The notes beneath the pieces were generated by a model, which was not told where the DNA came from, searched no databases, and saw only the letters and a program-made list of their open reading frames with translations. DNA of 64,000 nucleotides from Sphaerodactylus townsendi (Eukaryota), in assembly GCF_021028975.2 (NCBI RefSeq), contig NC_059438.1, positions 5,890,001 through 5,954,000 on the forward strand, in the 5' to 3' direction. Below, one piece after another: positions 11,042 to 44,046 of the stretch. How positions within the stretch are numbered: the first letter of the stretch is position 1; each line of letters starts with the position of its first letter. The translations under genes and the position numbers were made by a program.

Positions 11042-11702
11042 GTAATGTCTGTATTTTCACTGTGGAATGAACTGAAAGTGTAACTGCTCTGTGTGTGCAT
11101 GCATGCATATTTTCGCTTTTAATTTAGGTTGTTCAGAGTCTTCTCAACTTTCACAAGTTGCTACCACTGATTGTTCCTTTGCTCCTTTTTCTTTTTGCTT
11201 TATCCTAAATTTTCCCTTGAAAGTGAGCAGGGATTTTCCCAGGCTATGTACAACCAAGAACAATTCAGGGAGTTAGCTACCTGTTGCGTTTCCATTCCCT
11301 TCTCCCTCTCCCACCCCCAAGTTTAGGAAGCTGGATTGGATCCTGCTAGCACCCGGTATGCTATGGTGAAAATCACAGGACCTACGTGAACAAAAGCCAC
11401 GTGAGGCAGGGACTGTCATAAAAAGGGAAACTGAGCTTGCTTTAGCAAAAAAGCTGATTGGATGTGCCCTAGTGCTGTTTTGAATATTGGACTTAAATCT
11501 TGCTGAACTATCTGCAGGGTAACTTAAAAAAAAGTTGTCGTCACAGTTCAAATGTATCGGCTACAAATTTTGAACAATGGCTTTCTTTGGCCAGGAGTGA
11601 TCTCAAAGATGCCTTCTGTTGACTATTGCCCAAATCAAATTAAAACTGTTGAGATTTTTCTAAATAGATCTGCTTTGAATTCCATATGTTGAATATTTAC
11701 AG

Positions 11703-13527
11703 GGATCCACCGTGTAAGAAACGGAGAATGGAAATGGCAGCCTCCAATCATCAGCTGGGAGAAGAAGCAACAGAAAGCTCTGGCGATGCTGCTAGCCGAC
11801 GTGCTGGTACTAAAGACTTGGAGACATCCGAGATAAAACTTGCAACCTCTTTAGAGGATTCCACCCATTGCTGTACCACTAAGCCAACACAGGCACAACC
11901 AAAAAATGCACCAAAGTTGCTTCTACCGAAGCCCAAAGTAGCTCTGGTTAAACTTCCTGTAATGCAGCTTACTCACTTGCCCGTATGCCTGTTGGCACCA
12001 GACTCTTCTGTGAAACCCGTCGTCGTTGCTGTGGATGACAAAGGCTCTGTAATGAGCACGGTTCACTTAATGCCTCTGCCGGTAGGAATTGTACTACCAA
12101 CGATGGAGGCTGAAGCACTTACTTTTAGAGACACAGCACCCCTTTCAAAAACCAAAAGCTCTGTCAGCTTTGAGCCGGTCAGCACAGGAATCCAAGTCGA
12201 TTTGGGTAAAGCGGCCTCAAATAGTGCAGTGCAGGGTCTGGAAGCCGTATGTTACAAGAACGGGATCTGTTCCACAGACATCCAGACGGACCTGTCCTTT
12301 ATTGCACAGAACTTTGCACCCTCTGCGTCTTGGGCTCCCGATTCCTCCGTGTCCTCTTGTTCTCAAACCGATCTGACGTTCAGTTCGCAAGTTCTGCTGC
12401 CCATTAGCGTTCAGACACAGACTCTGTTGCCGGGTTCGAAGCCGACCTCATCCATCGCTGCCCAGACGGATGCTTTTGCCCACGCTTGCTTTCAGTCATG
12501 TGGAATTTCGAGAGAGACTCAGACCAACAGGTCCCAGAAGGGGATGGATGGAAGAGTACAAATGGACCAGGCTGTGATGTGCAATGACATTTTTGACGAT
12601 GTTACTTCGTCGTTCGATTCATCCCCAGTGGTCCTTTCTGGCAGCAGCTTGATTGCCAGTGAGCTGGATCAGAACCTGCTACAAAGAGAAACCTGCAAGT
12701 CTTTGAGTCAGGACGCAAAATCCGAGGCGATGATCAACTTCAGCACACAGCATAATCTGCTTCCGCAGCAAGTTATGACTGACAACCAAACTCAGACCAT
12801 GGAGTTATTGAGTGACCTTGAAACTATTTTTTCAGGTAATACTGCTGAGCAATCATTACATAACCGTGGTCTTCTGACAGATGCTAACCCTCACGCTGAA
12901 CCACCCCTGCCTTCTGGCCCTAACCAGAATGCAGCAATAGATTTTGACATTGAGGATTTCTTCACTGCCTCCAATATCCAGACTCAGACAGAGGAGGCTG
13001 AATTCGGTAACTTGACCTCAGAGCCGGTCTTGGAATCACTGGATATTGAAACTCAAACGGACTTATTTTCAGACAACACGGTGCAGCCATACAACTGCAG
13101 AGGTAACGTGAACTTTTTGGGCCTGGAGATGTTTGACACGCAGACCCAGACCGACTTGAACTTCTTCTTGGACAGCCCCCATCTGCCTCTGGGCAACATC
13201 CTGAAGCAGTCTGCCTTCTCCATGAGCACAGACTCATCTGACACAGAGACACAGACAGAAATGCAGCTTCTGGAGAGAAACGCCTTAAGCCAGGTGGCCG
13301 AGAGCAAAGTGCAGCTGAACAGTGCCGAGACACAGACTATGGACAGCTGCTTTGAAACCTTTAGTAGCTTATTCCTTACGAGCAACGAGACTCAGACTGC
13401 CATGGACGACTTCTTACTGGCTGACTTGGCCTGGAATACAATGGAGTCACAGTTCAGCTCGGTAGAAACGCAGACTTGTGCAAAACTGTGCTCTTTGTTT
13501 CAGGATTCTGACAAGGCCGGCCAGTGA
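11703..13527 (+). CDS. ATMIN: ATMIN coding exon 4 (SQ/TQ cluster, DYNLL1-binding TQT motifs)
   Basis: Acceptor atttacag|G completes the Arg codon, then DPPCKKRR. Contains KLLLPKPKVALVKLPVMQ, many xxTQT motifs and DDFLLADLAWNTMESQFSSVETQT. Stop TGA ends at 13527. Spliced CDS 255+126+200+1825=2406 nt, 801 aa. Confidence 0.97.
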
Positions 13528-20572: not shown

Positions 20573-21047
20573 ACAGCCCAATCTGGGGCGGGGGAAGGAA
20601 GTGGTGGGGGCCTATGCTGACGAATTTGCCCTCCCCAGGGCACTTTCCACATCAGAGCTCCTGCCCCCCACCAACTCCACCAGCATAGTGGAAGCATTCC
20701 GGAGGTGTGGCCAGGGATGGAACCAACCTTAGTCGCTTCAACCCTGGCTTTGACTCCCGGAACGCTGGTGCCCAGAGGCTTAGCAAGGGGGGAAAGTGCC
20801 CAGTGCACCGGTGTATCCTCTGCCACTGTCCCACCCTGGAACGCTCCCATCACACCCCCATAGGGGGGGCGCCCTGTGTGTCCCCTCCCCGGTCCCCTTG
20901 GAGCTACACCTCTGCTAGTGCCCAGGGCCTGGACTTTCCACCTTTTGGGTTGCATAAGCCCATTGAACCTCCAAAAAGCTCTCTGGAGGCAGTGGGGTAG
21001 CACTGCAGTGGTGCTGATCCTGGCTGCCCCACAGCTCTGGATTAGAT
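20573..21047. mobile_element. GC-rich interspersed repeat, probable composite non-autonomous DNA element
   Basis: Ends resemble cagcccaatct...ggattagatg. An internal segment (20783-20880) recurs inverted at about 52290-52385. Confidence 0.5.
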
Positions 21048-21152
21048 GGCTCGTGTGCTCTCTAATTAAAGGTTCAGATGATTAATTCAAAGATTAAGGC
21101 TTGTAGCTCTTTGTTCTGTTATTCTTATTTTACCAGAGTCATACAACCAATA

Positions 21153-21998
21153 TCAGTTTCCATACCCCCTTGAACTAGCAACGTTTGCATATCGCTCTGA
21201 ATGAGACATCATGCTGCGCAGGGAAAAGAATGGGTCAGGTGAGTTAGGAAGGCAAGGTAAATTATCTCTGAGCATTAAGGACACATGGAAGAGTGGTACA
21301 TGATTTTTTATTTGCTTTGTTGCTATAATATTCATCTCACCAACGTTTCTTTTACTCTTTTGCTTTCCTTTTCTAATTTTGGGTCTGTGGGAGTCGGTTT
21401 CAGTTGAGGTGCTGCTGCTTCCCCCTTTCTCAGTTCTTTTTGCTGTAATTGTTTCATTTTTCTTCGAAAGGGGTTCCACATGGAAACTGACCATTCCTTT
21501 TCCATCCGGTTTTAGGAACAACATTTCATTTAAGGTTGGATAGCTAAAACTGCTATGGGAGTTACTGTGAATTATTTTCGGCAAGCGATACTTGGGGTAT
21601 TTTAGGACCGCAGGTTCTGTGTGTCCTAGAGAGTACTCAATCTCATATTCCTTTATTGGGAGGATCCTCTTTTCACCAAGGAATGCCTGAATGCTGTCTA
21701 GTTTGCCATTCCTTCTTTCTCCCTCAGGGTGAGCAGGTATCGGTGGAATATAGTTGTATGGCTTCACATAAGAGGCTTCTAACTTCTTACAGGTTGAAAC
21801 AGTTTCTCCTGCAGCAAACTTACAATATGTTTTTGCCCGAACTCTCGCAGGTTGTCTTATACCAGTCAGATTTCTCTCAGGAGCAGAAGCCTTGCTTGTG
21901 TGAGATATATTAGAGACTGTTTTGCTTATTCTTGGGTTCTTGGGTTTTTCCTGTCTCTTGCAGCATGCGAAAGGAGTAGCTCTCCCCCAGCCATGTTC
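21153..21998 (-). CDS. Diverged duplicate of the C16orf46 terminal exon (candidate alternative last exon or paralog), 281 aa
   Basis: Acceptor ttttatctttccag|GAA, phase 0, at the same position relative to GW as the main exon. EHGWGRATPFAC aligns to VQGWNKTAPFAY; EKRILPIKEYEI aligns to EKKAVPIREYSI. 846-nt open frame with no stops. Confidence 0.75.
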   Translation of the reverse strand, partial: EHGWGRATPFACCKRQEKPKNPRISKTVSNISHTSKASAPERNLTGIRQPARVRAKTYCKFAAGETVSTCKKLEASYVKPYNYIPPIPAHPEGERRNGKLDSIQAFLGEKRILPIKEYEIEYSLGHTEPAVLKYPKYRLPKIIHSNSHSSFSYPTLNEMLFLKPDGKGMVSFHVEPLSKKNETITAKRTEKGGSSSTSTETDSHRPKIRKGKQKSKRNVGEMNIIATKQIKNHVPLFHVSLMLRDNLPCLPNSPDPFFSLRSMMSHSERYANVASSRGYGN

Positions 21999-24900
21999 CT
22001 GGAAAGATAAAATCACGTTGCATGTAAAACTGAGAATTTGGCTGCTGGACTTTGTAATTTTGTAGCCACCGGCATTTAATGCAGATAACTTAGCCACCTT
22101 TTCTAACTAGAAGTGGTTCTGAACTTTGGCGAAATTCTTTTCCAGCCTGCTCAGGTGAAGGGAACTGTACAATATTGCTTTGAGTTTGCAAAATAAGAGT
22201 TAACTATTCCACTTAAACGTTGGACATAATTTGGGCTGTGATGGTTGTCAGCATACTGAGTAACGGGAATGTAACTTACAAGAATCAGGATCCAAAAATC
22301 TACTTAAGCCCATATTGTACTATCAGGGGACTTTTTTCCTATAAGCAATTGGCCCACCCACAGTATATCAAACTGGTTTTTACGCTCCCTTCAGTTTACA
22401 AGTAAACATCTACCAGTTTTGCCTGCGATAGGATACTAAACCTTTCTTGTAATTTTTAAAATCTTTACAGAATCTTTGGTTGTTCATGATTACGATGTAA
22501 AACAAGGCTTTGTATATACAATGGAAAGCAACTTGAGAGCATGTAACCGATGTATAAGTGTCAAATGCTGAATATGGAATACAACAGATTTTATCTCCTA
22601 TCTTGGTAATGCATGCCCTGTGCACTCTTTCTTGTGTTCCACAGAAACACACACATCTGTTAATATATTTGTTATAGAAAGTTCAATGGAACCAATTTTT
22701 ACAATCACACATTCCAGCTAAATTGTAGACAGAAAAGCTCAGTGATGTTTTTCATCCTCACAAAACATTACATACAAATGCTCTGTTGAATGCAAAACAC
22801 AATAAAGCAGATTTTTTATTTTTTAAAAAAACTATTAAAATACACTCTGTTTTAAAGGGAACTGATAATCCACCAGAACTGTAACATCCATTCGTTTGGG
22901 CTTTGGGGCTAATGGGAATATTAACAAAAGACATGAGCCAACCAAAGCTAAGAGCTTTTTTTAGTTTGCTTCATTCATATTAAAGTGTTGTCAAGTTGAG
23001 GCTGACTTTGCGTGAACCCACCCAAGGGGTTTTTAAAGCAAGAGAGGACAAGAGGTGGTTTATCATTGCATTCCTCTGCATAGTAGCCCCAGTTTTCCTT
23101 GGTGGTCTCCCATCCAAATACTAACCTCAGCCAACCCTTCTCTGCTTTTATTTATTTATTTATTTTATATATTAGATTTAGGAACCGCCCACCCCCGAAG
23201 GGCTCCAATAGGCTCAGGGTTGGCTAGAGTATTCAGGCGACTTTTTGTTGGTTTAGAATATTTATATACCACTTTACCCCAAGAGTGTTGCCACTTTGAT
23301 TTCAATGGGAGAGTTAGGCATTTGCTAAAGAATCCCCCCCTCGGACGCAGCGTGGCACGCACCTCCAAATGGACCTGTTAAAACCCAAGGAGGCTTTGCT
23401 ATGCTCTCTTTGCTACTGGGCAAGAGTCCATTGGGCTAAAGATGGATCAAATATTGTTCACATTAGTGCCAGTTTCCTCCCCCTCTTTTGGAAGTTGTTG
23501 ATGCTCTCACTGGAGTAGCAGGAAAGTTAACTTCGATGCCTATTAAACCCTGTTGTCCAGCTTTCTCCCTTGGTTTAAAACTGGTAATTCAATCCTCCAG
23601 TATTACAGCTTTTCACATTTGAATTACTCACAGAGGGGTAGCCATGTTAGTCTGTTGTAGCAAAATAAAACAAAATTCCAGTGGTGCCTTAAAGACTTGC
23701 AGCCCAATTCAGATGGGGTAAGGGGCAGAATGGCTGTGAGAGCAGCACAGGACCATACTGATGTATTTGCCTACTCTGCTGGCATAAGGGGCACCTACAC
23801 CAATGGGGAGAGCAAAATATTCTGCCCATAACATTCAACAAGAGCGTTTGTGAGTCAAGAGCTAACTTCTTTAGATATGTGAACAAGTGAGGTCTGATTC
23901 ACAAAAACTCACACCAAAATAAATGTTAATCATGAAGGAACCACAGGACCTTTTTCCACATTTAAAGCCTCTGCATTTTCATTTGCACCAATAGTATGGG
24001 CCAATTATTTTTATTCACTGTAAACAGGGACAGTGATTTCATACTTAGAAAGTATCATGATTCTCTTTTTTGTCAAAAAGCCAAAAACTGCTTATTTTCT
24101 TTCTATTTAGCTTTATTTTCAACTATTAATATCACTCAGTTCATAAATATGAAAGAATAACATCGGCTGAATGCAGGAACCATGCACTCAATCACACATA
24201 GGTTTCAATATGGCATTAAAACACTTTTTTTATCACTTAGCAGGTTTATATAGCCAACTAGTTATAGGCATGTCATGGTAAGTTACTACTATGGTTGCCT
24301 GTATCTTCCTCTTATCCAAAAGTTTGCTTAAAGCCCCACTTGAGTTAGATCACACAATCCTTCATAATTTCTCCAGTGGAAGATTCTTCACTTGGCAAAA
24401 GCCAACCGTTGGATGTAAATTACACAGATTTTTGCCTCTTAAGAAATGTAGTTCAGTTTTTTAGTTCAGTGCCCTTACTGTTAGTTGAGCACACAAGGCC
24501 TCATGTTACACACTTGTCGAATAACTTAAGCTTAAAACCTGCTGTTACAGACTTGCTGACCAGTAATTCCATTCATATCTCCTTGGAGATAATTGGGTTT
24601 TCATTGGAAAAGGGCCATTGCTGAGCATTTGTTCTCTATGTTGGTGGCATTTTAACACTTTTGTTTAAAATGCCTTTCTGCCGGTGTAGAGAACTGAAGA
24701 CCAAGTCTCCACAGGCTGAAAGAATAGCAACTATCTTATATCCGTGTCTGCAATTGAGAATACTGATTCTTACTTTGATTATGACCAATTTGTATAATAC
24801 CTTATAGAAGACCTGTCCTTTTCTTGAGTACGATTTCATGTTGGTCAAGTGTAATATAAAATGTGGATTGTGGAGGAGATTACCACCAGAGGCTTCCATT

Positions 24901-26246
24901 ACGTTTTCCAGTGGTTTACACTCATGAAAAATTCTGCCAGCCATCTCCGCAACTGCCCAGATTGCACACTGTGGGGAGGACTGCAGCTGCTTGCCTGGGC
25001 AAGAAATGCATTTTGTTAACTAGCAAGTAATGTACATACACCCTTGACTAGTAGGTAAGACCTCTTTGTAGTTTCAAAAACATATTCAGCACTCTGATAT
25101 TTTGAGTATAGAAGACTTAATGGGATATCTACAAGAGTATGACAAGTACACATTTGTAGATTTGTTGGAGATTAAGAGCAATTTGCAAAACCATTAGGAG
25201 AATAAAACTACTTGTAGATTTCAAATCTAAGTGGGCTCTGTGAATCTCAGATTTAAAGTTACACTGGAATATCAGAAATGCCATCACCTCCCCACAACTC
25301 CAAATGCATCAGGTAAGATGTAAGATAACTACAGCAGGTGACGCTGAGGAAATCTTGACTCAGATACTGAGGAACACTGTCACTGTGCATACAAACAAAG
25401 CATCTTCTGGAAGCTATGTTATCAATCTGAGCTACTTAATTTGGCATGAAGGAGAACAGTCACAGCTACCTTAAACTGAACAAGTACAATCAACACAAAG
25501 AAAAAATAACAGCCAAATACTAGTTCTGTTTACTTACATTCTTACATACTCATCAAACATAAAAGGAATTGTTACAACAAAATTATGGCACCCAGACATG
25601 ACCATATTCAACTGCTTTGCAGTGTTAGAGAGGCTAGATGATTACTTCAGATACCTTTCTTGGTTCTGTTCTATCAAAGTGCTTGGGCCAAGCCTGTACA
25701 ACCTGTGACCAATCAAACTACAGCCTGCCAGGACTCCCCAGTCTTTGCACCAGACGGGAACTTTTAGTGGGCTGTTACACGTTGCTTGTGGGCTATACCT
25801 AGCTTGATGAGTCTAGTTGTGCAGTTTTGGGAAGGCAAGGCCCAAGTCTTTATTTATTTTATTTATTTTTTATTTATTTTCGATTTATTATACCGCCCCA
25901 TCCCCGTAGGGCTCTGAGTACGATTTGGCCATCAAAGAGAACTTGGCAATATCTCTGACTACTTTGTTTTCCCAGATTGGCGGGAAAGACTGGCTACATT
26001 TCTGGCCTTGCAATAGCTCCTACCAACTGTTCAAATCAATGAGGAGAACGCAGTTCACACTTATCTAATCTAGGGCATAGGAAGTACTGATACAGCAGGT
26101 ATCCGATCCCCCAGATAAGAGCTGTGAGGGTCTCCCTTTAAGGACATGAAGGTTTTACTATATCAAGGGGCCTCATCCAGCCATTGTACTTTATCAAGGC
26201 TTGCTGCAGAGAGCTCAACCGAAATCAAGTGTTCAAGGGTCTACAT

Positions 26247-26382
26247 CCGTGGTGGCGAACCTTTGGCACTCCAGATGTTATGCACTACAATTCCCATCAG
26301 CCCCTGCCAGCATGGCCAATTGTAGGGGCTGATGGGAATTGTAGTCCATAACATCTGGAGTGCCAAAGGTTCGCCACCACTG
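26247..26382. mobile_element. Palindromic hAT MITE
   Basis: Near-perfect hairpin; TIRs ccgtggtggcgaacctttggc / gccaaaggttcgccaccactg; 8-bp TSD gtctacat. Confidence 0.9.
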
Positions 26383-26583
26383 GTCTACATGTTACAAGAG
26401 GAGTGAATGGAAATTTTAAGTTTTTCATAAAAACAGATTCAGTCCTTTCTTCACAAAATAGCACCTATACGATTAACAAATACCCAGTCTGGTTTACAGT
26501 AGACCTTCAGTATTTTCTTTCATAATACAAAGAGCTCCAAACAAATCAATAAACAGCTCAGCATGAAAATTACAATAAAACAG

Positions 26584-27690
26584 TCAGGTCAGCCTAGAAG
26601 GCAAGGCAGTTATTGCAACATGGCTGACCGTTAAGGAAGGGAACAGTCCAGAAAGCAGTGGGATCTCCTGTGTTTTTGGCTCATTTCCTGGTTTGGGTCC
26701 AGTGTGACTCCTGCTTCGGGCGCAAGGATCCCAATTCTCATCGGCTTTGCTGTCACGAGCTCCTTTAGTATGCAGAAAATGCACACCGGAGAGATGACTC
26801 TTTCTTCTCAATGCAACTGAATTAGACATGGCTGAATTTTTTCTCTCGGGTACAAGAGTACAGCGCCAGTAGCACTGGTCCGTGGTTCCTGAGATGCATG
26901 AAGTCTTGGGACACTGTGGGGCAAAAGAGGCTCTCTTGTGGATTTTTACCGACTCCTTGAATGCATCACCTGTTGGAGGTATTCCTTTCTCATGTTTGGA
27001 TTCTTTGGTTTTGAAAATCTGAGTGCGATAAATTGTCTCTGAAAGAGCTCGAGTTGCTTTTTCATACGCCTGGAAAATAACGGGCTTACTTTTCTTTGAC
27101 GAAGGGTCCAGGCTGCATTTGAAAACTGTGTCCTTCAGAGGAGGCAAGAGCAGTGACGATTTAACAGCAGTCGCTTCAGAGTCTCCCAGATGACCTATCG
27201 TAGGCTCGTGGCTCTTTGTATCTTTGCATCTCAAGGTTTCTACACTTTTTGGCTTTCCAAGAGGCAATATGCTGTACTCTCTTATTGGCACCGCTTTCTT
27301 TTCTGCTTGGAGTAGCTGACTCTCCTTCATTAGAAAAGTCTTCTTTTCGCTTAAAGAAACTTGAGCTTCCTTAAAGGACAATCTTTTCTTTTCCCCTTGG
27401 GATGTCTGGGTTGAATATAATTTACTACTACAGTTGTCTTTTTTTGAATCGTCAACCACAGGGTAAGTACTCAGAGCTGTATTAGAATAGAGCACAGTTT
27501 GTTTCTCTGGAACGCTGCTTGTGGTGACCTCTGAACTTAACTTGGAGTCTTGCTCCAAACCTTTGTCAATAACTTGCATCAGATCTAAGCAATACAGGCA
27601 GCCATGGACAGACTCACTTGTCCTTGTTTTTCTAGCTCTTTTTTGTAACTGAAGATAAGCAAATGGGGCTGTTTTGTTCCAGCCTTGCAC
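26584..27690 (-). CDS. C16orf46: C16orf46 homolog (DUF4529), terminal coding exon
   Basis: Acceptor ttgctctcag|GTG, phase 0. VQGWNKTAPFA...CLYCLDL...EKKAVPIREY...LLLPPLK...LFPSLTVSHV match C16orf46 motifs. 368 aa here, 438 aa in total. Confidence 0.93.
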   Translation of the reverse strand: MQGWNKTAPFAYLQLQKRARKTRTSESVHGCLYCLDLMQVIDKGLEQDSKLSSEVTTSSVPEKQTVLYSNTALSTYPVVDDSKKDNCSSKLYSTQTSQGEKKRLSFKEAQVSLSEKKTFLMKESQLLQAEKKAVPIREYSILPLGKPKSVETLRCKDTKSHEPTIGHLGDSEATAVKSSLLLPPLKDTVFKCSLDPSSKKSKPVIFQAYEKATRALSETIYRTQIFKTKESKHEKGIPPTGDAFKESVKIHKRASFAPQCPKTSCISGTTDQCYWRCTLVPERKNSAMSNSVALRRKSHLSGVHFLHTKGARDSKADENWDPCARSRSHTGPKPGNEPKTQEIPLLSGLFPSLTVSHVAITALPSRLT

Positions 27691-31068: not shown

Positions 31069-31278
31069 TGCTTCCTCCCATCCTGTTCCATTAACAGACT
31101 CCAAGGACTTTTCTTCTTGCTCAGTTGAACTTTTACTGATGTTCAAAAGAATGTGGATCTGATTTCTCTCCCTTCTCTCATCCGGATAAGTGCAGCGCCA
31201 GTCTCTTTCCACAGTTTTCCCATTTGCAGTAGCTCTTTCAGAGTTGATTTCACTTTGATCCTGGCCAGTGGAAGTCAT
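31069..31278 (-). CDS. C16orf46: C16orf46 homolog (DUF4529), first coding exon
   Basis: Encodes 70 aa MTSTGQ...CTYPDERRERNQIHILLNISKSSTEQEEKSLESVNGTGWEEA, matching the recalled mammalian YTCPDGKSEKNHVYCLLDVS...EQDEK...GTGWEEA. Donor GCA|gtgagtaag; upstream acceptor tttataaatacag| at 31317. Confidence 0.92.
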
Positions 31279-39895: not shown

Positions 39896-40213
39896 TTCCA
39901 ACTGGGAAAGCGCGGGCAGTGGTGGGGAGCAGACTTTTTGGAGGGCAGCGGTGGTGGTGGGGAGTTATGCTGGGTGCGATGCCTGGGGGCGGGGCTTGTC
40001 CAGTCACTGTTTTGTGGTGATTTAGCCTCCCCAGGGCACTTGCCCTAGCAGAGAAGCAATTCTGCCAGCATGCAGCCTCCTCAGCCCTCCCTGGCACTGG
40101 GACATGGCACCAGCTTCCCAGCACTGTTAAGCCCAATGCAATGAGGGTTTCTTAGCAGCAGGGAGGCTTTCTTCCTTTGCAAGCCTCCTCATGCCGCCAA
40201 GAAGCCCCTATGG

Positions 40214-40361
40214 CAGGGGTAGGGAACCTGCGGCTCTCCAGATGTTCAGGAACTACAATTCCCATCAGCCCCTACCAGCATGGCCAATTGGCCATGCTGG
40301 TAGGGGCTGATGGGAATAGTAGTTCCTGAACATCTGGAGAGCCGCAGGTTCCCTACCCCTG
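40214..40361. mobile_element. Palindromic hAT MITE
   Basis: Almost perfect 148-bp palindrome caggggtagggaacctgcggctc...gagccgcaggttccctacccctg; 8-bp TSD ccctatgg. Confidence 0.9.
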
Positions 40362-41920
40362 CCCTATGGGAACATTGGGGCAGCGTGGCTGCAGTACTGC
40401 GGCCAGCTGCCTGGCCTCTTGAATGGATCTCAGGGAAAAAACACTCTGTCCTCTCAGCACTGACTGAAAACTGGGACTCCAGCTGCCAGCCAAATACAAG
40501 CTGCTGTGGTTAACTCCTTGTAGGCTAGAACTTTGATTACAAGCAGCAAAGGAGTCCTGGAATCCATCACAGCCTACAATAGATTACATTTTTCTCGATC
40601 TGTAGTACTGCTTCTGATTTTGATTATGACTTATAAGATTCTCTATTTGCATTTTCATTCTTAGTTTGAGAACCAACATGGTATAGTGGTTAAGACTGAC
40701 CCAGGACAGCTTCAAAACATCATGCACGCCATGGAAGCTTGCTTGGGTCCCTTGGACCAGCCACATACTCTCAGCGCTGTCACCGTGGCTAGTATTTGGA
40801 TGGGAGACCTCCAAGAAATACCACGATTGCGAGGCAATGGCAAACCATCTCCAATCTAGGGGTTTTCAGTCTTTTGAGAAATAGGACACCACAATATTCT
40901 AAGTAAATAAAATCAGAGCAGTAAAAATGCAAATAATAAATTAAGCAAAGAGATTTTTAATCAAACCTCCATTTGTTAATTTTGTTAAAACAACCAGCAC
41001 ATATTAAAGCAGGAGTGAATTGAGCTAGGTTACTAAATGCTTTCTGCTTTTATAGAAGTGGCACTGCTTTTCTCTAATCCTCATAATTTTTACATCATCA
41101 GGGTACTGCTCTATGCCATTGGCTTTCTTTTCACGCCAAAGGACGCTCCATTTTCCTGATCCGCGCCTTTTGCCTTTGACAGTGACTGAGCGCCTCTGCA
41201 GCTGAAGCGCGGCTGCCTTATTGCAAGTGCATGCCAGGGGATGGAGCTGGCTTCACTTCCTCCTTTTCAACGCGTTTGCAAACTCGCCGCACGCTCATTA
41301 GCCTCCTTCCCCCGAGCCAGGCTCTGGGTCCGCTACTTGCGTAACGGAGGAGGATGGCGCGATGCCTTGTAATGGCTCTGCCGGGGAATCCCTTCTGCCG
41401 CCGCCTCCTCTTTTGGATCTCGCTAAGGGCACCGGGGGAGCGGGGGAGGCAAAGGAACCGTCACGACCAAGGAAGAGGCTGGCGGCGGCGGGGAGAGGGA
41501 AGGAGGCTCCGGCGAGGCCGGGGGAGCAGAGGGGGCGGGCAGGCCGAGAGGAGGGGGCGGAGAGTGGCGCGCTGATGAATCGGGACGCGGACACGAGGCC
41601 CGGGATGCGTAGATTTTGCTGCATGACTCCGGCACGACGTCAGCAGCGGCACGTCCAGACGGTCTCCCCCAGAAAGCGCGCCGGACTCCGCAGCCGCGCC
41701 AGCGCCCGAGCAGTGCCGCCACGGCAGCAGCAGCAGCAGCAGCAGCGGGGGGAGCTCTCAGGCCAGCGCGGACCGCGGGAGGGGGGCTGCGCTTGAGTCA
41801 CGACGACCCGCCGGTTCTGCAGTCAAGAGACCTCCCGACGACTCCGGGCTCCCCCGGCCGGAAAGGGCTGTAGCTGCTTGGCCAGCGCCGCCGGCCGTGC
41901 CTCAAGGGACGGAGCGAGCC

Positions 41921-41929
41921 ATGCACTGA
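41921..41929 (+). promoter_or_regulatory. Minimal uORF (Met-His-stop) upstream of the PPP1R3 start codon
   Basis: gagccATGCACTGA, ending 19 nt before the main ATG at 41949. Confidence 0.6.
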
Positions 41930-41948
41930 CCGGACGGAGAAGAAGAGC

Positions 41949-42986
41949 ATGGAGAAGGCCGGCTCCCTGCACGCCTCGGTGCCGGCGCCGCCGCCGCGCC
42001 TCTACCTGCCGCGCCACTTCAGCTGCAGCGCGTGCCTCTATGGCGGCCTGGCCGAGCGCTGCAAGGGCGGCTGCAGCCCGGAGCCCGAGGCGGTGGAACT
42101 GGCGCCCTCGCCGCCCGCCTCGCCGCCCCCCGTGACCCGCCAGGCGCCCTCGCCGCCTCCCGCGCCGCGATCGCCCTCGCCGCCGCCCGCCTCGCCCTCG
42201 TCGCCCTCCGCCTCGCGCGGCAGGGAGCCCACGGTGTCCGCCGTGCCGCCCAGCCCCACGCTGCGCCGCCGGGCCAAGTCCCTGCCCACGCCCGGCGAGA
42301 GGGGTCTCCGGCCGGCCCTGCAGCAGAGCCCGTCGCGCCGCAAGACGGTGCGCTTCGCCGACTCGCTGGGCCTGGAGCTGATCGCCGTGCGCCACTTCTG
42401 CCAGGCCGACGTGCCGCACGTGCCGCCCCCGCCGGCGCCCCTGCCCGCCTCGCCGCTGCCCCGCGCCGCGGACCTGCTCAAGACGCGCAAGCCGCCGGCG
42501 CTGGGGGAGCTGGAGCCGGTGCTCTTCGGGCCGCCCGCGGGGCCCGCGCTGGAGCCGCTCTTCCCGCCGCAGCCCGGCAGCAGCGCCGGCTTCCTGGAGC
42601 GCGTGCGGCAGAGCAAGGTCCGGCTGGAGGCCGTGCGGGCCGAGGCGGCGGCGCTGCGCGGCTCGGTGCGCGTCCTGAACCTGGCCTACGAGAAGGCCGT
42701 CTCGGTGCGCTACACGCTCAACCGCTGGGCCAGCAGCCACGAGGTGCCCGCCGCCTACCTGCCGCCGGGCCACGCCGGGGACGGCCTCACCGACCGCTTC
42801 GTCTTCCGCCTGCCCGTGGGCGCCGGCGCCACCTGCCTGGAGTTCGCGCTGCGCTACCGCGTGGCCGGCGCCGAGTACTGGGACAACAACGACGGCCACA
42901 ACTACAAGCTGCGCGCCCGGCACAGGCCGCCCGACGCCTCCTGCCCCCAGGCCGACGGCGGGGGCGCCTGGATCCATTTCATCTGA
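41949..42986 (+). CDS. PPP1R3E: Protein phosphatase 1 glycogen-targeting regulatory subunit, PPP1R3E-like (single coding exon, 345 aa)
   Basis: RVxF PP1-docking motif KTVRFADSLGLEL. CBM21 motifs GSVRVLNLAYEKAVSVRY, DRFVFRLP and FALRYRVAGAEYWDNNDGHNY. C-terminal WIHFI is typical of PPP1R3D/E; RRAKSLP motif present. Family assignment is firm; exact orthology (E, D or a separate paralog) is not. Confidence 0.88.
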   Translation: MEKAGSLHASVPAPPPRLYLPRHFSCSACLYGGLAERCKGGCSPEPEAVELAPSPPASPPPVTRQAPSPPPAPRSPSPPPASPSSPSASRGREPTVSAVPPSPTLRRRAKSLPTPGERGLRPALQQSPSRRKTVRFADSLGLELIAVRHFCQADVPHVPPPPAPLPASPLPRAADLLKTRKPPALGELEPVLFGPPAGPALEPLFPPQPGSSAGFLERVRQSKVRLEAVRAEAAALRGSVRVLNLAYEKAVSVRYTLNRWASSHEVPAAYLPPGHAGDGLTDRFVFRLPVGAGATCLEFALRYRVAGAEYWDNNDGHNYKLRARHRPPDASCPQADGGGAWIHFI

Positions 42987-44046
42987 GCACCACCGGGCCG
43001 GCTTCCCCTGCCCTGAAGGCCGCCGCCGCCGCCGCCAGCCTCTGCAGCTGCGCCTCTCCGGGGTGCGGCAGGCGCCCTCCTTGCTGCGTGGGGCCAGAGA
43101 GGACCAAGAGCGCCTCCACCGCTGCGGGGAGTGATGGTCTCATGATGTGCTTATAGTAAGGAGTCTGCACCTCCTCCAGTGCTGTGGCCTCATGCACTTT
43201 ATAGTAAGGAATCCTGCTCCTGCCAGAGGAAGTGAAAAACACTGTGTAAAGCAAAGCCCACCTCCAACCGTATGGCCCCTTATTTGCTTGGTTTGTGTGT
43301 TTCTTTTGTTTTGTTTTTTGCTTTGCTGCCCGCTGCCCACTGTCTCTGAGGCACAAGTGTGCCAAAACGTTCCACATCCACCTTTGACTTTGAATTGTCT
43401 TTTTCTTCTTGCCAGCTAGGTCTGCACTTCTCAATTTACTGAACAGGAAGGAAGTTCCGTTGAAGTCTGCTGTAGTTCTCGCCAAGGCGATGAGCCACAT
43501 GTGGTCCTCCACCTCAGGCGGAAAGTGAGGAATCACATGTCTCAGTGCTCCTCCACAGAAACAGTTCCCTGCAGGTAGACAACTGGAACATTAGGGGACA
43601 GCCTGTTTTGGCTGTGACGTGTTAATTTTCCATTGGCAGGGAGATTTTCTGTGGAGGAGAGTTCAGTAGCATGATTCAGCATCTACAGTCGTATAGCCCA
43701 GACAGACGTTTGCCACCCCAGTGAAAACTGGCACTCGATAAAGCATGGGCCGCATACATGTTTTGAGTTGTGAGCCTGCTGCGGCCGTACACTCACCATG
43801 CTGTGTTTAGGCAGTGTGTTCCCCTGAGATCAGTTTTTTTTTTAATGTGTTTACAGCAGTCGCCTACTGCAAAGAGCCACAATTGGCTGGAGACTGGTGA
43901 CATCACTAGTCCATTCCCCCAAAGCAGTTTCTTGGCATTTTAAAAACTGGTTTTTTTTTAAGGTGTCTAGAAATACGTTTAATTGGATGGATGTACTCGC
44001 AAATATTGAACATTGAAAACAAGGAAGTGGCAAGGCAAGCTACTGA

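Follow-up and report, generated by a model that had tools for sequence, protein, structure and literature searches.

An old tandem copy of the large coding exon of reptile C16orf46 is very likely spliced behind a composite exon

The window, a stretch of 64,000 nucleotides from the gecko Sphaerodactylus townsendi, carries C16orf46 on its minus strand and, behind the canonical large exon of this gene (exon 2a), a second large coding exon (exon 2b). Exon 2b is very likely an old tandem copy of exon 2a that is spliced behind it via an internal donor at position 26629, with exon 2a acting as a composite exon. We propose that the first two thirds of exon 2a were duplicated in tandem once, before the lineages of lizards and snakes, of turtles and of crocodilians parted, and that the copy, exon 2b, has diverged but was kept coding; it would have neither a promoter nor a first exon of its own and would be reached by splicing in phase 0 from the donor ACG/gtcagc (26629) to the acceptor at 21998. 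When the donor is used, exon 2a would be an internal exon and the protein would consist of exon 1 (70 aa), exon 2a (354 aa) and exon 2b, with two diverged copies of a disordered module. When the donor is read through, exon 2a would be terminal: 14 more codons would lead to the canonical stop, the transcript would end in the intron and the product would be a mammal-like protein of 438 aa. Skipping of exon 2a, with exon 1 joined directly to exon 2b, would be at most a minor third form here. The features of the locus are the following:

31069-31278, minus strand: first coding exon of C16orf46 (exon 1), 70 aa counted from the ATG, donor GCA/gtgagt at 31069/31068
26584-27690, minus strand: exon 2a (canonical large exon), 368 aa plus stop at 26584-26586, acceptor ...ctctcag/GTG
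21999-22027, minus strand: acceptor region of exon 2b, pyrimidine tract plus AG, ...tctttccag/GAA, phase 0
21153-21998, minus strand: exon 2b, duplicated C16orf46 coding exon, 281 codons plus stop at 21153-21155
11698-13527, plus strand: last exon of ATMIN, convergent with C16orf46

The original prediction had singled out the 846-nt minus-strand open frame at its strong acceptor, and this frame is longer than chance allows: it is also open for 33 codons 5' of the acceptor, up to 22097, and its 314 open codons exceed the maximum of 268 seen in 200 first-order Markov simulations of the window. The end of exon 1 (GCA/gtgagt) and the positions of the two acceptors place the exon 2a and exon 2b acceptors in the same phase (phase 0) and at the same residue of the family motif, just as predicted; the predicted lengths of 438 aa and 351 aa, for exon 1 joined to the one or the other, are correct as arithmetic. 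The position of the exon 2b acceptor is conserved across all reptile loci examined, and the acceptor is used in the RNA of a close relative. Exon 1 (E 1.3e-11, 44.7 bits, profile positions 9-70) and exon 2a (E 4e-22, 79.3 bits) match the Pfam family DUF4529 (PF15032); since both pass the threshold, the whole C16orf46 product is a member of this family, and together the two exons of the window cover profile positions 9-400 of 406. Exon 2a has 82% identity to Euleptes and 78% to both Gekko japonicus and Heteronotia.

All homology searches were done exon by exon. Within the window alone, exon 2b matches exon 2a with a BLASTP E of 3e-4. A DUF4529 profile search on the 281-aa peptide, as proposed with the original prediction, stays under the gathering score (27 bits), with E 0.06-0.1 and 12.1-12.8 bits; the match spans profile positions 72-253, directly after the 9-70 of exon 1, and exon 2b orthologues reach E <1 in three of six cases (best 8e-4). 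Homology to the canonical last exon is established by profile-profile comparison: hhalign aligns the exon 2b alignment with the exon 2a alignment at a probability of 96.8% and E 2.4e-10 (2b 107-228 against 2a 138-260). The exon 2b HMM also matches exon 2a of the window (E 1.7e-9) as well as the canonical proteins of crocodile, duck and turtle (1e-7 to 1e-28), and exon 2b of the window finds exon 2a of Zootoca by tblastn with E 1e-9 to 6e-12. Exon 2b corresponds to about the first 260 residues of exon 2a, i.e. the first two thirds; the last third is missing. Its best-conserved stretch surrounds GEKR.LPIKEYEI, with EKK.VPIKEYSI as the counterpart in exon 2a, and the conserved core motif of both modules is (L/V)P(I/V)(K/R)EY.

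A folded domain in exon 2b was considered and rejected: AlphaFold2, run on a shallow alignment of six exon 2b sequences, returned a mean pLDDT of 47, a pTM of 0.11 and no secondary structure. A structure prediction of this kind, with no confident fold, would agree with a disordered protein that carries short motifs.

The RNA comes from a relative that is about 1-1.5% diverged from the window species: of the 31-mers sampled, 75% occur in it, and its DNA contig has 32 differences over 2,148 positions. Three runs were mapped on positions 20900-26880, a range that has exon 1 on its outside. Two of the three show neither exon 2a nor exon 2b, indicating that C16orf46 expression is tissue-restricted. 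The third, X7, is a single unstranded run from an unspecified tissue, and about 6% of the run was analysed. The following features and depths describe splicing in this run:

26623-26640, minus strand: internal donor in exon 2a, ...ccttccttaacg/gtcagc, exon end at 26629, GT at 26628-26627
21999-26628, minus strand: intron of the long isoform, 4,630 nt, CT..AC on the plus strand and thus GT..AG on the minus strand
24433-26583, minus strand: likely 3' UTR of the read-through isoform, X7 depth 18-71x to ~24300, then ~6x
26700-26880, exon 2a: X7 depth ~430x
Exon 2b: X7 depth 220-320x
Intron beside the exon 2b acceptor: X7 depth 1.5-7x

In X7, 366 reads with 76 distinct starts join 26629 to 21998, with GT..AG on the minus strand; the spliced reads into 21998 on which the original prediction hinged are thus present in the relative. 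The donor lies after codon 354 of exon 2a, in phase 0 and 45 nt ahead of the canonical stop, and the intron contains the last 14 codons, the stop and the 3' UTR of the canonical isoform together with two high-copy repeats. The number of junction reads roughly matches what would be expected from the depth at the acceptor, there is no other joint into 21998 among the joints listed and no loose end of at least 116 reads at this position: exon 2b is therefore added behind exon 2a and not in its place, and the main product in X7 is exon 1 plus exon 2a (354 aa) plus exon 2b, with two diverged modules in tandem. The low depth of 1.5-7x in the intron beside the acceptor indicates that no separate 5' exon adjoins it.

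Use of exons 2a and 2b as mutually exclusive last exons behind exon 1 (438 aa and 351 aa), as the main mode, is unlikely. The two acceptors are alike in phase and motif position, and RefSeq predicts short forms with exon 1 joined to exon 2b in Zootoca vivipara (isoform X2, 301 aa) and Thamnophis elegans (isoform X3, 293 aa), a join that was unseen as a supported junction in the relative's RNA across 20900-26880. However, the reads that link 21998 to 26629 are about all that the acceptor depth allows, with no further joint or loose end among those listed, and the long three-part form is the RefSeq model in both available geckos. Exons 2a and 2b do share adjacency, homology and compatible phase with mutually exclusive tandem exons, but not the exclusivity itself, as 366 reads join exon 2a sequence to exon 2b. 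The prediction that exon 1 splices to either last exon is matched, for the exon 1-2b join, by the gene models of Zootoca and Thamnophis, and a minor form of this kind, which the mapped RNA bounds only indirectly, may occur, while the main donor into 21998 is the one at 26629; the corollary that the isoforms share only the N-terminal 70 aa falls, because the major protein carries both modules.

Exon 2a has one hallmark of a composite terminal exon, a functional 5' splice site upstream of its stop, and the reads that join exon 2b to it place exon 2b in the C16orf46 transcription unit beside ATMIN. Read-through past 26629 is about 77x in X7, or about 18% of transcripts, as estimated from the bin that straddles the donor and assuming uniform exon depth, and the spliced long form accounts for about four fifths. 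Many X7 molecules begin at 24433/24434, near which no canonical poly(A) hexamer was seen. The stretch from 24433 to 26583 is likely the 3' UTR of the canonical 438-aa form; intron retention, precursor RNA or a separate transcript could also account for its coverage. Splicing in the window species would be the same as in the relative, and the isoform ratio, the poly(A) sites and the production of both proteins would follow the proposed model.

The single-copy stretch 24300-25100 is transcribed at 59-71x in X7, compared to 18-40x upstream, and traces of it appear in both runs without C16orf46; it may mark where the canonical isoform ends or belong to a separate transcript. The repeats at ~23095-23300 and 26247-26400 are high-copy interspersed elements unrelated to the gene, with DNA word depths in the millions: all three RNA runs pile up on both of them with many loose ends, and depth is inflated in those bins.

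The 19-nt donor block is identical in five squamates and a turtle and has one change in the alligator. However, mammals and newt, whose annotation has no long form, likewise conserve the peptide encoded at the donor, LPSLTVSRV; thus, conservation of the block is no proof of selection on the splice site. Mammalian C16orf46 (PF15032) has this tail motif in common with the window, while the second module is missing in annotated mammals.

The secreted and membrane forms of immunoglobulin mu are produced from a composite terminal exon by a choice between splicing and polyadenylation. The likeness is that a 5' splice site lies in the last exon shortly before the stop and its use swaps a short C-terminal tail for one or more downstream exons; unlike in immunoglobulin mu, the downstream exon of C16orf46 is a paralogous copy of the upstream one. 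C16orf46 is a case of tandem exon duplication with alternative 3' processing.

The three-part arrangement is already present in the automatic gene models of many reptiles, including two geckos: at least ten reptile annotations have long-form proteins that hold both exons. In RefSeq and GenBank these are, for geckos, Paroedura picta (681 aa) and Heteronotia binoei (755 aa), for other squamates Podarcis (671 aa), Hemicordylus (661 aa), Notechis scutatus (XP_026527789.1, 655 aa) and Pseudonaja textilis (XP_026569925.1, 660 aa) and for turtles Natator depressus (622 aa), Pelodiscus sinensis isoform X1 (660 aa) and Pangshura (632 aa). In the models of Liasis and Phrynocephalus, exon 2a is likewise cut after ...LFPSLT and continues into exon 2b. 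The reptile RefSeq long forms agree with the window in their three parts, in their junction (...LFPSLT / E.GWGRATPF...) and in their gene neighbourhood, and exon 2b of the window is 70% and 62% identical to the two gecko long-form proteins over 243-251 aa. They differ in that the long forms of the other reptiles are automatic predictions, and in that the window copy has a longer, lineage-specific tail. Annotated proteins of crocodilians, birds, mammals, newt and coelacanth have 350-425 aa and no second module; the two-module arrangement seems to be standard for reptiles and absent from the annotated proteins of these other groups. Among the papers found that mention C16orf46, none treats exon 2b or the exon structure or evolution of the gene.

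A search of the interval between ATMIN and C16orf46 in other reptiles, suggested with the original prediction, found exon 2b in lizards, snakes, turtles and the alligator. The order exon 1, exon 2a, exon 2b and convergent ATMIN (where the sequence reaches it) is the same in Zootoca, Thamnophis, Liasis, Phrynocephalus, Natator and the alligator. In an Alligator mississippiensis assembly, there is, 5.3 kb behind the canonical exon, an open frame of 297-300 codons (L007:19675-20577, plus strand; the same ORF is at L006:3764-4657), with a TTCCAG/GTA acceptor and part of the C-terminal third retained. It is closest to turtle exon 2b (45-47% identity) and is missing from the RefSeq alligator protein (377 aa); the ATMIN part of the Logan contig that carries the frame is 100% identical to Alligator mississippiensis. 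In Natator depressus, a fragment about 5 kb behind exon 2b (L008:25489-25806, plus strand) matches only the canonical last third, with 37-40% identity over about 100 aa; it may once have formed the end of the original duplicate, or it may be a partial third copy.

Several reptile models deviate from the three-part scheme. In Mauremys reevesii X1 (P0012), exon 2b runs for 35 codons before an early stop, Pogona X4 (P0042) uses another donor, 39 codons into exon 2a, to join exon 2b, and in Pelodiscus X2 (P0040) the middle of exon 2a is joined to the middle of exon 2b. The Varanus model (P0057) has about 120 unrelated residues between exons 1 and 2a, which are probably an annotation artefact.

These data correct the gene model of the locus: reptile C16orf46 would mainly be a two-module protein of about 650-700 aa rather than a mammal-like one of about 400 aa. 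With no function known for C16orf46, the practical value is modest; annotation becomes cleaner, and a short conserved motif that occurs twice may guide a binding study.

When a maximum-likelihood tree is constructed from 43 exon 2a and exon 2b sequences, all exon 2b copies, from geckos, other lizards, snakes, turtles and the alligator, form one clade (support 100/99), and the branching within this clade follows the species tree. The exon 2a sequences of sauropsids group in a second clade (94/93), and the two clades together stand against mammals and newt with weak support (89/54). A single exon 2b clade that follows the species tree indicates one duplication, before the split between lepidosaurs and the turtle/archosaur lineage, and suggests that the exon was duplicated in tandem no later than the origin of crown reptiles. 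This would date the event to the reptile stem or earlier, with a copy that stayed coding throughout.

Pairwise dN/dS values (Nei-Gojobori) are 0.22-0.50 for exon 2b, comparable with 0.27-0.46 for exon 2a and 0.17-0.37 for exon 1. Exon 2b values of 0.29-0.50 come with a bootstrap confidence interval that stays under 1 in each of three independent comparisons (a gecko pair, a snake pair and a lacertid/agamid pair), in agreement with the purifying selection that the original prediction had suggested. In the gecko pair (window and L005), dN/dS of exon 2b is 0.50 (CI 0.35-0.76, 228 codons). Between the window and the close relative, exon 2b has 6 nonsynonymous and 2 synonymous differences, which are small numbers with no sign of recent constraint. 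Each of the five gecko sequences seen keeps the first 231 codons of the frame uninterrupted.

The C-terminal end of exon 2b differs from the rest. The part conserved across squamates is 21306-21998 (231 aa). In squamates other than geckos, exon 2b ends with ...KKQIQKSC.AL and a stop, about 50 codons before the stop of the window. A 1-nt deletion (caaata-aaaaatc; window 21303-21315, minus strand) is common to the geckos (the window, L005, P0002, Heteronotia and Paroedura) and shifts the frame past the ancestral stop, so that the last 50 codons of the window lie after the frameshift. The resulting tail, N(H/N)VP.FHVS... after ...KQIKN, differs from gecko to gecko in length and frame: in Heteronotia the stop follows ...SLML, in Paroedura it comes 22 codons later and in the window 38 codons after ...SLML. 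The deletion also creates a hexamer within the open frame:

21307-21312, minus strand: AATAAA inside the ORF, made by the gecko 1-nt deletion; ATTAAA in L005

RNA coverage in X7 supports exon 2b from ~21383 (perhaps ~21300) to 21998. In the bin 21100-21299 the depth is 0.44x, while the DNA of the relative is collinear across the region, and the last ~80-230 nt of the open frame, including its stop, therefore seem to be missing from the mature RNA; dips in depth may also stem from filtered reads. Near 21383, about half of the molecules start at that very position, which has no GT and no poly(A) hexamer just upstream of it; the tract 21380-21340 is A-rich. Of the 281 aa originally read for exon 2b, the first 231 are thus conserved, while the C-terminal part, after the frameshift and beyond RNA coverage, is doubtful. 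The AATAAA at 21307-21312 may act as a poly(A) signal. There is a slim chance that the gecko long mRNA ends at this hexamer (21312-21307), ahead of every in-frame stop in the genome, and that the poly(A) tail supplies the rest of its stop codon: with cleavage after T21290, 17 nt beyond the hexamer, the result would be an in-frame CTC/UAA. Otherwise such an mRNA would be a non-stop mRNA.

These features of the tail also bear on whether exon 2b is transcribed but decaying in the gecko lineage, with a long transcript that is non-productive or a regulatory by-product. The loss of the ancestral stop to the deletion, the tails of differing length and frame, the RNA depth of about zero over the last 150 or more nt of the ORF, the 6:2 ratio of nonsynonymous to synonymous differences from the close relative and the early stop in Mauremys reevesii all speak for decay. 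However, the dN/dS of the gecko pair, with a confidence interval that stays below 1 over 228 codons, and the 231 codons open in every gecko sequence seen speak against it, and the spliced form makes up about four fifths of X7 transcripts, unlike typical decay targets. We consider decay very unlikely and prefer a copy that was kept coding and is spliced behind exon 2a.

The reading of exon 2b as part of a separate paralogous gene, whose own promoter and first exon would lie between 22.0 and 26.5 kb, is close to refuted: the frame is open for 33 codons beyond the acceptor, but no exon-1-like sequence is present in the searches, the depth upstream of the acceptor is 1.5-7x against ~300x in the exon, reads cross to 26629 and all public models attach exon 2b to C16orf46. 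As predicted, exon 2b has no first exon of its own: tblastn of the exon 1 peptide over the whole window returned nothing better than E 0.4 for a second exon-1-like sequence, and an HMM scan of six-frame pieces between 13.6 and 33 kb, which would also detect a third copy of the large exon, had exons 2a and 2b as its only significant hits.

Two minor observations concern the surroundings of these exons. A 26-codon piece at 24014-24091 (minus strand), FLTKKRIMILSKYEI, recalls the core motif FLGEKR.LPIKEYEI with an HMM E of 0.8, which is not significant; it may be left over from a further copy or may have arisen by chance. Upstream of C16orf46, positions 40000-44000 of the window form a G+C-rich island (0.56-0.64, compared to ~0.42 elsewhere) that is probably the CpG-island promoter of a neighbouring gene.
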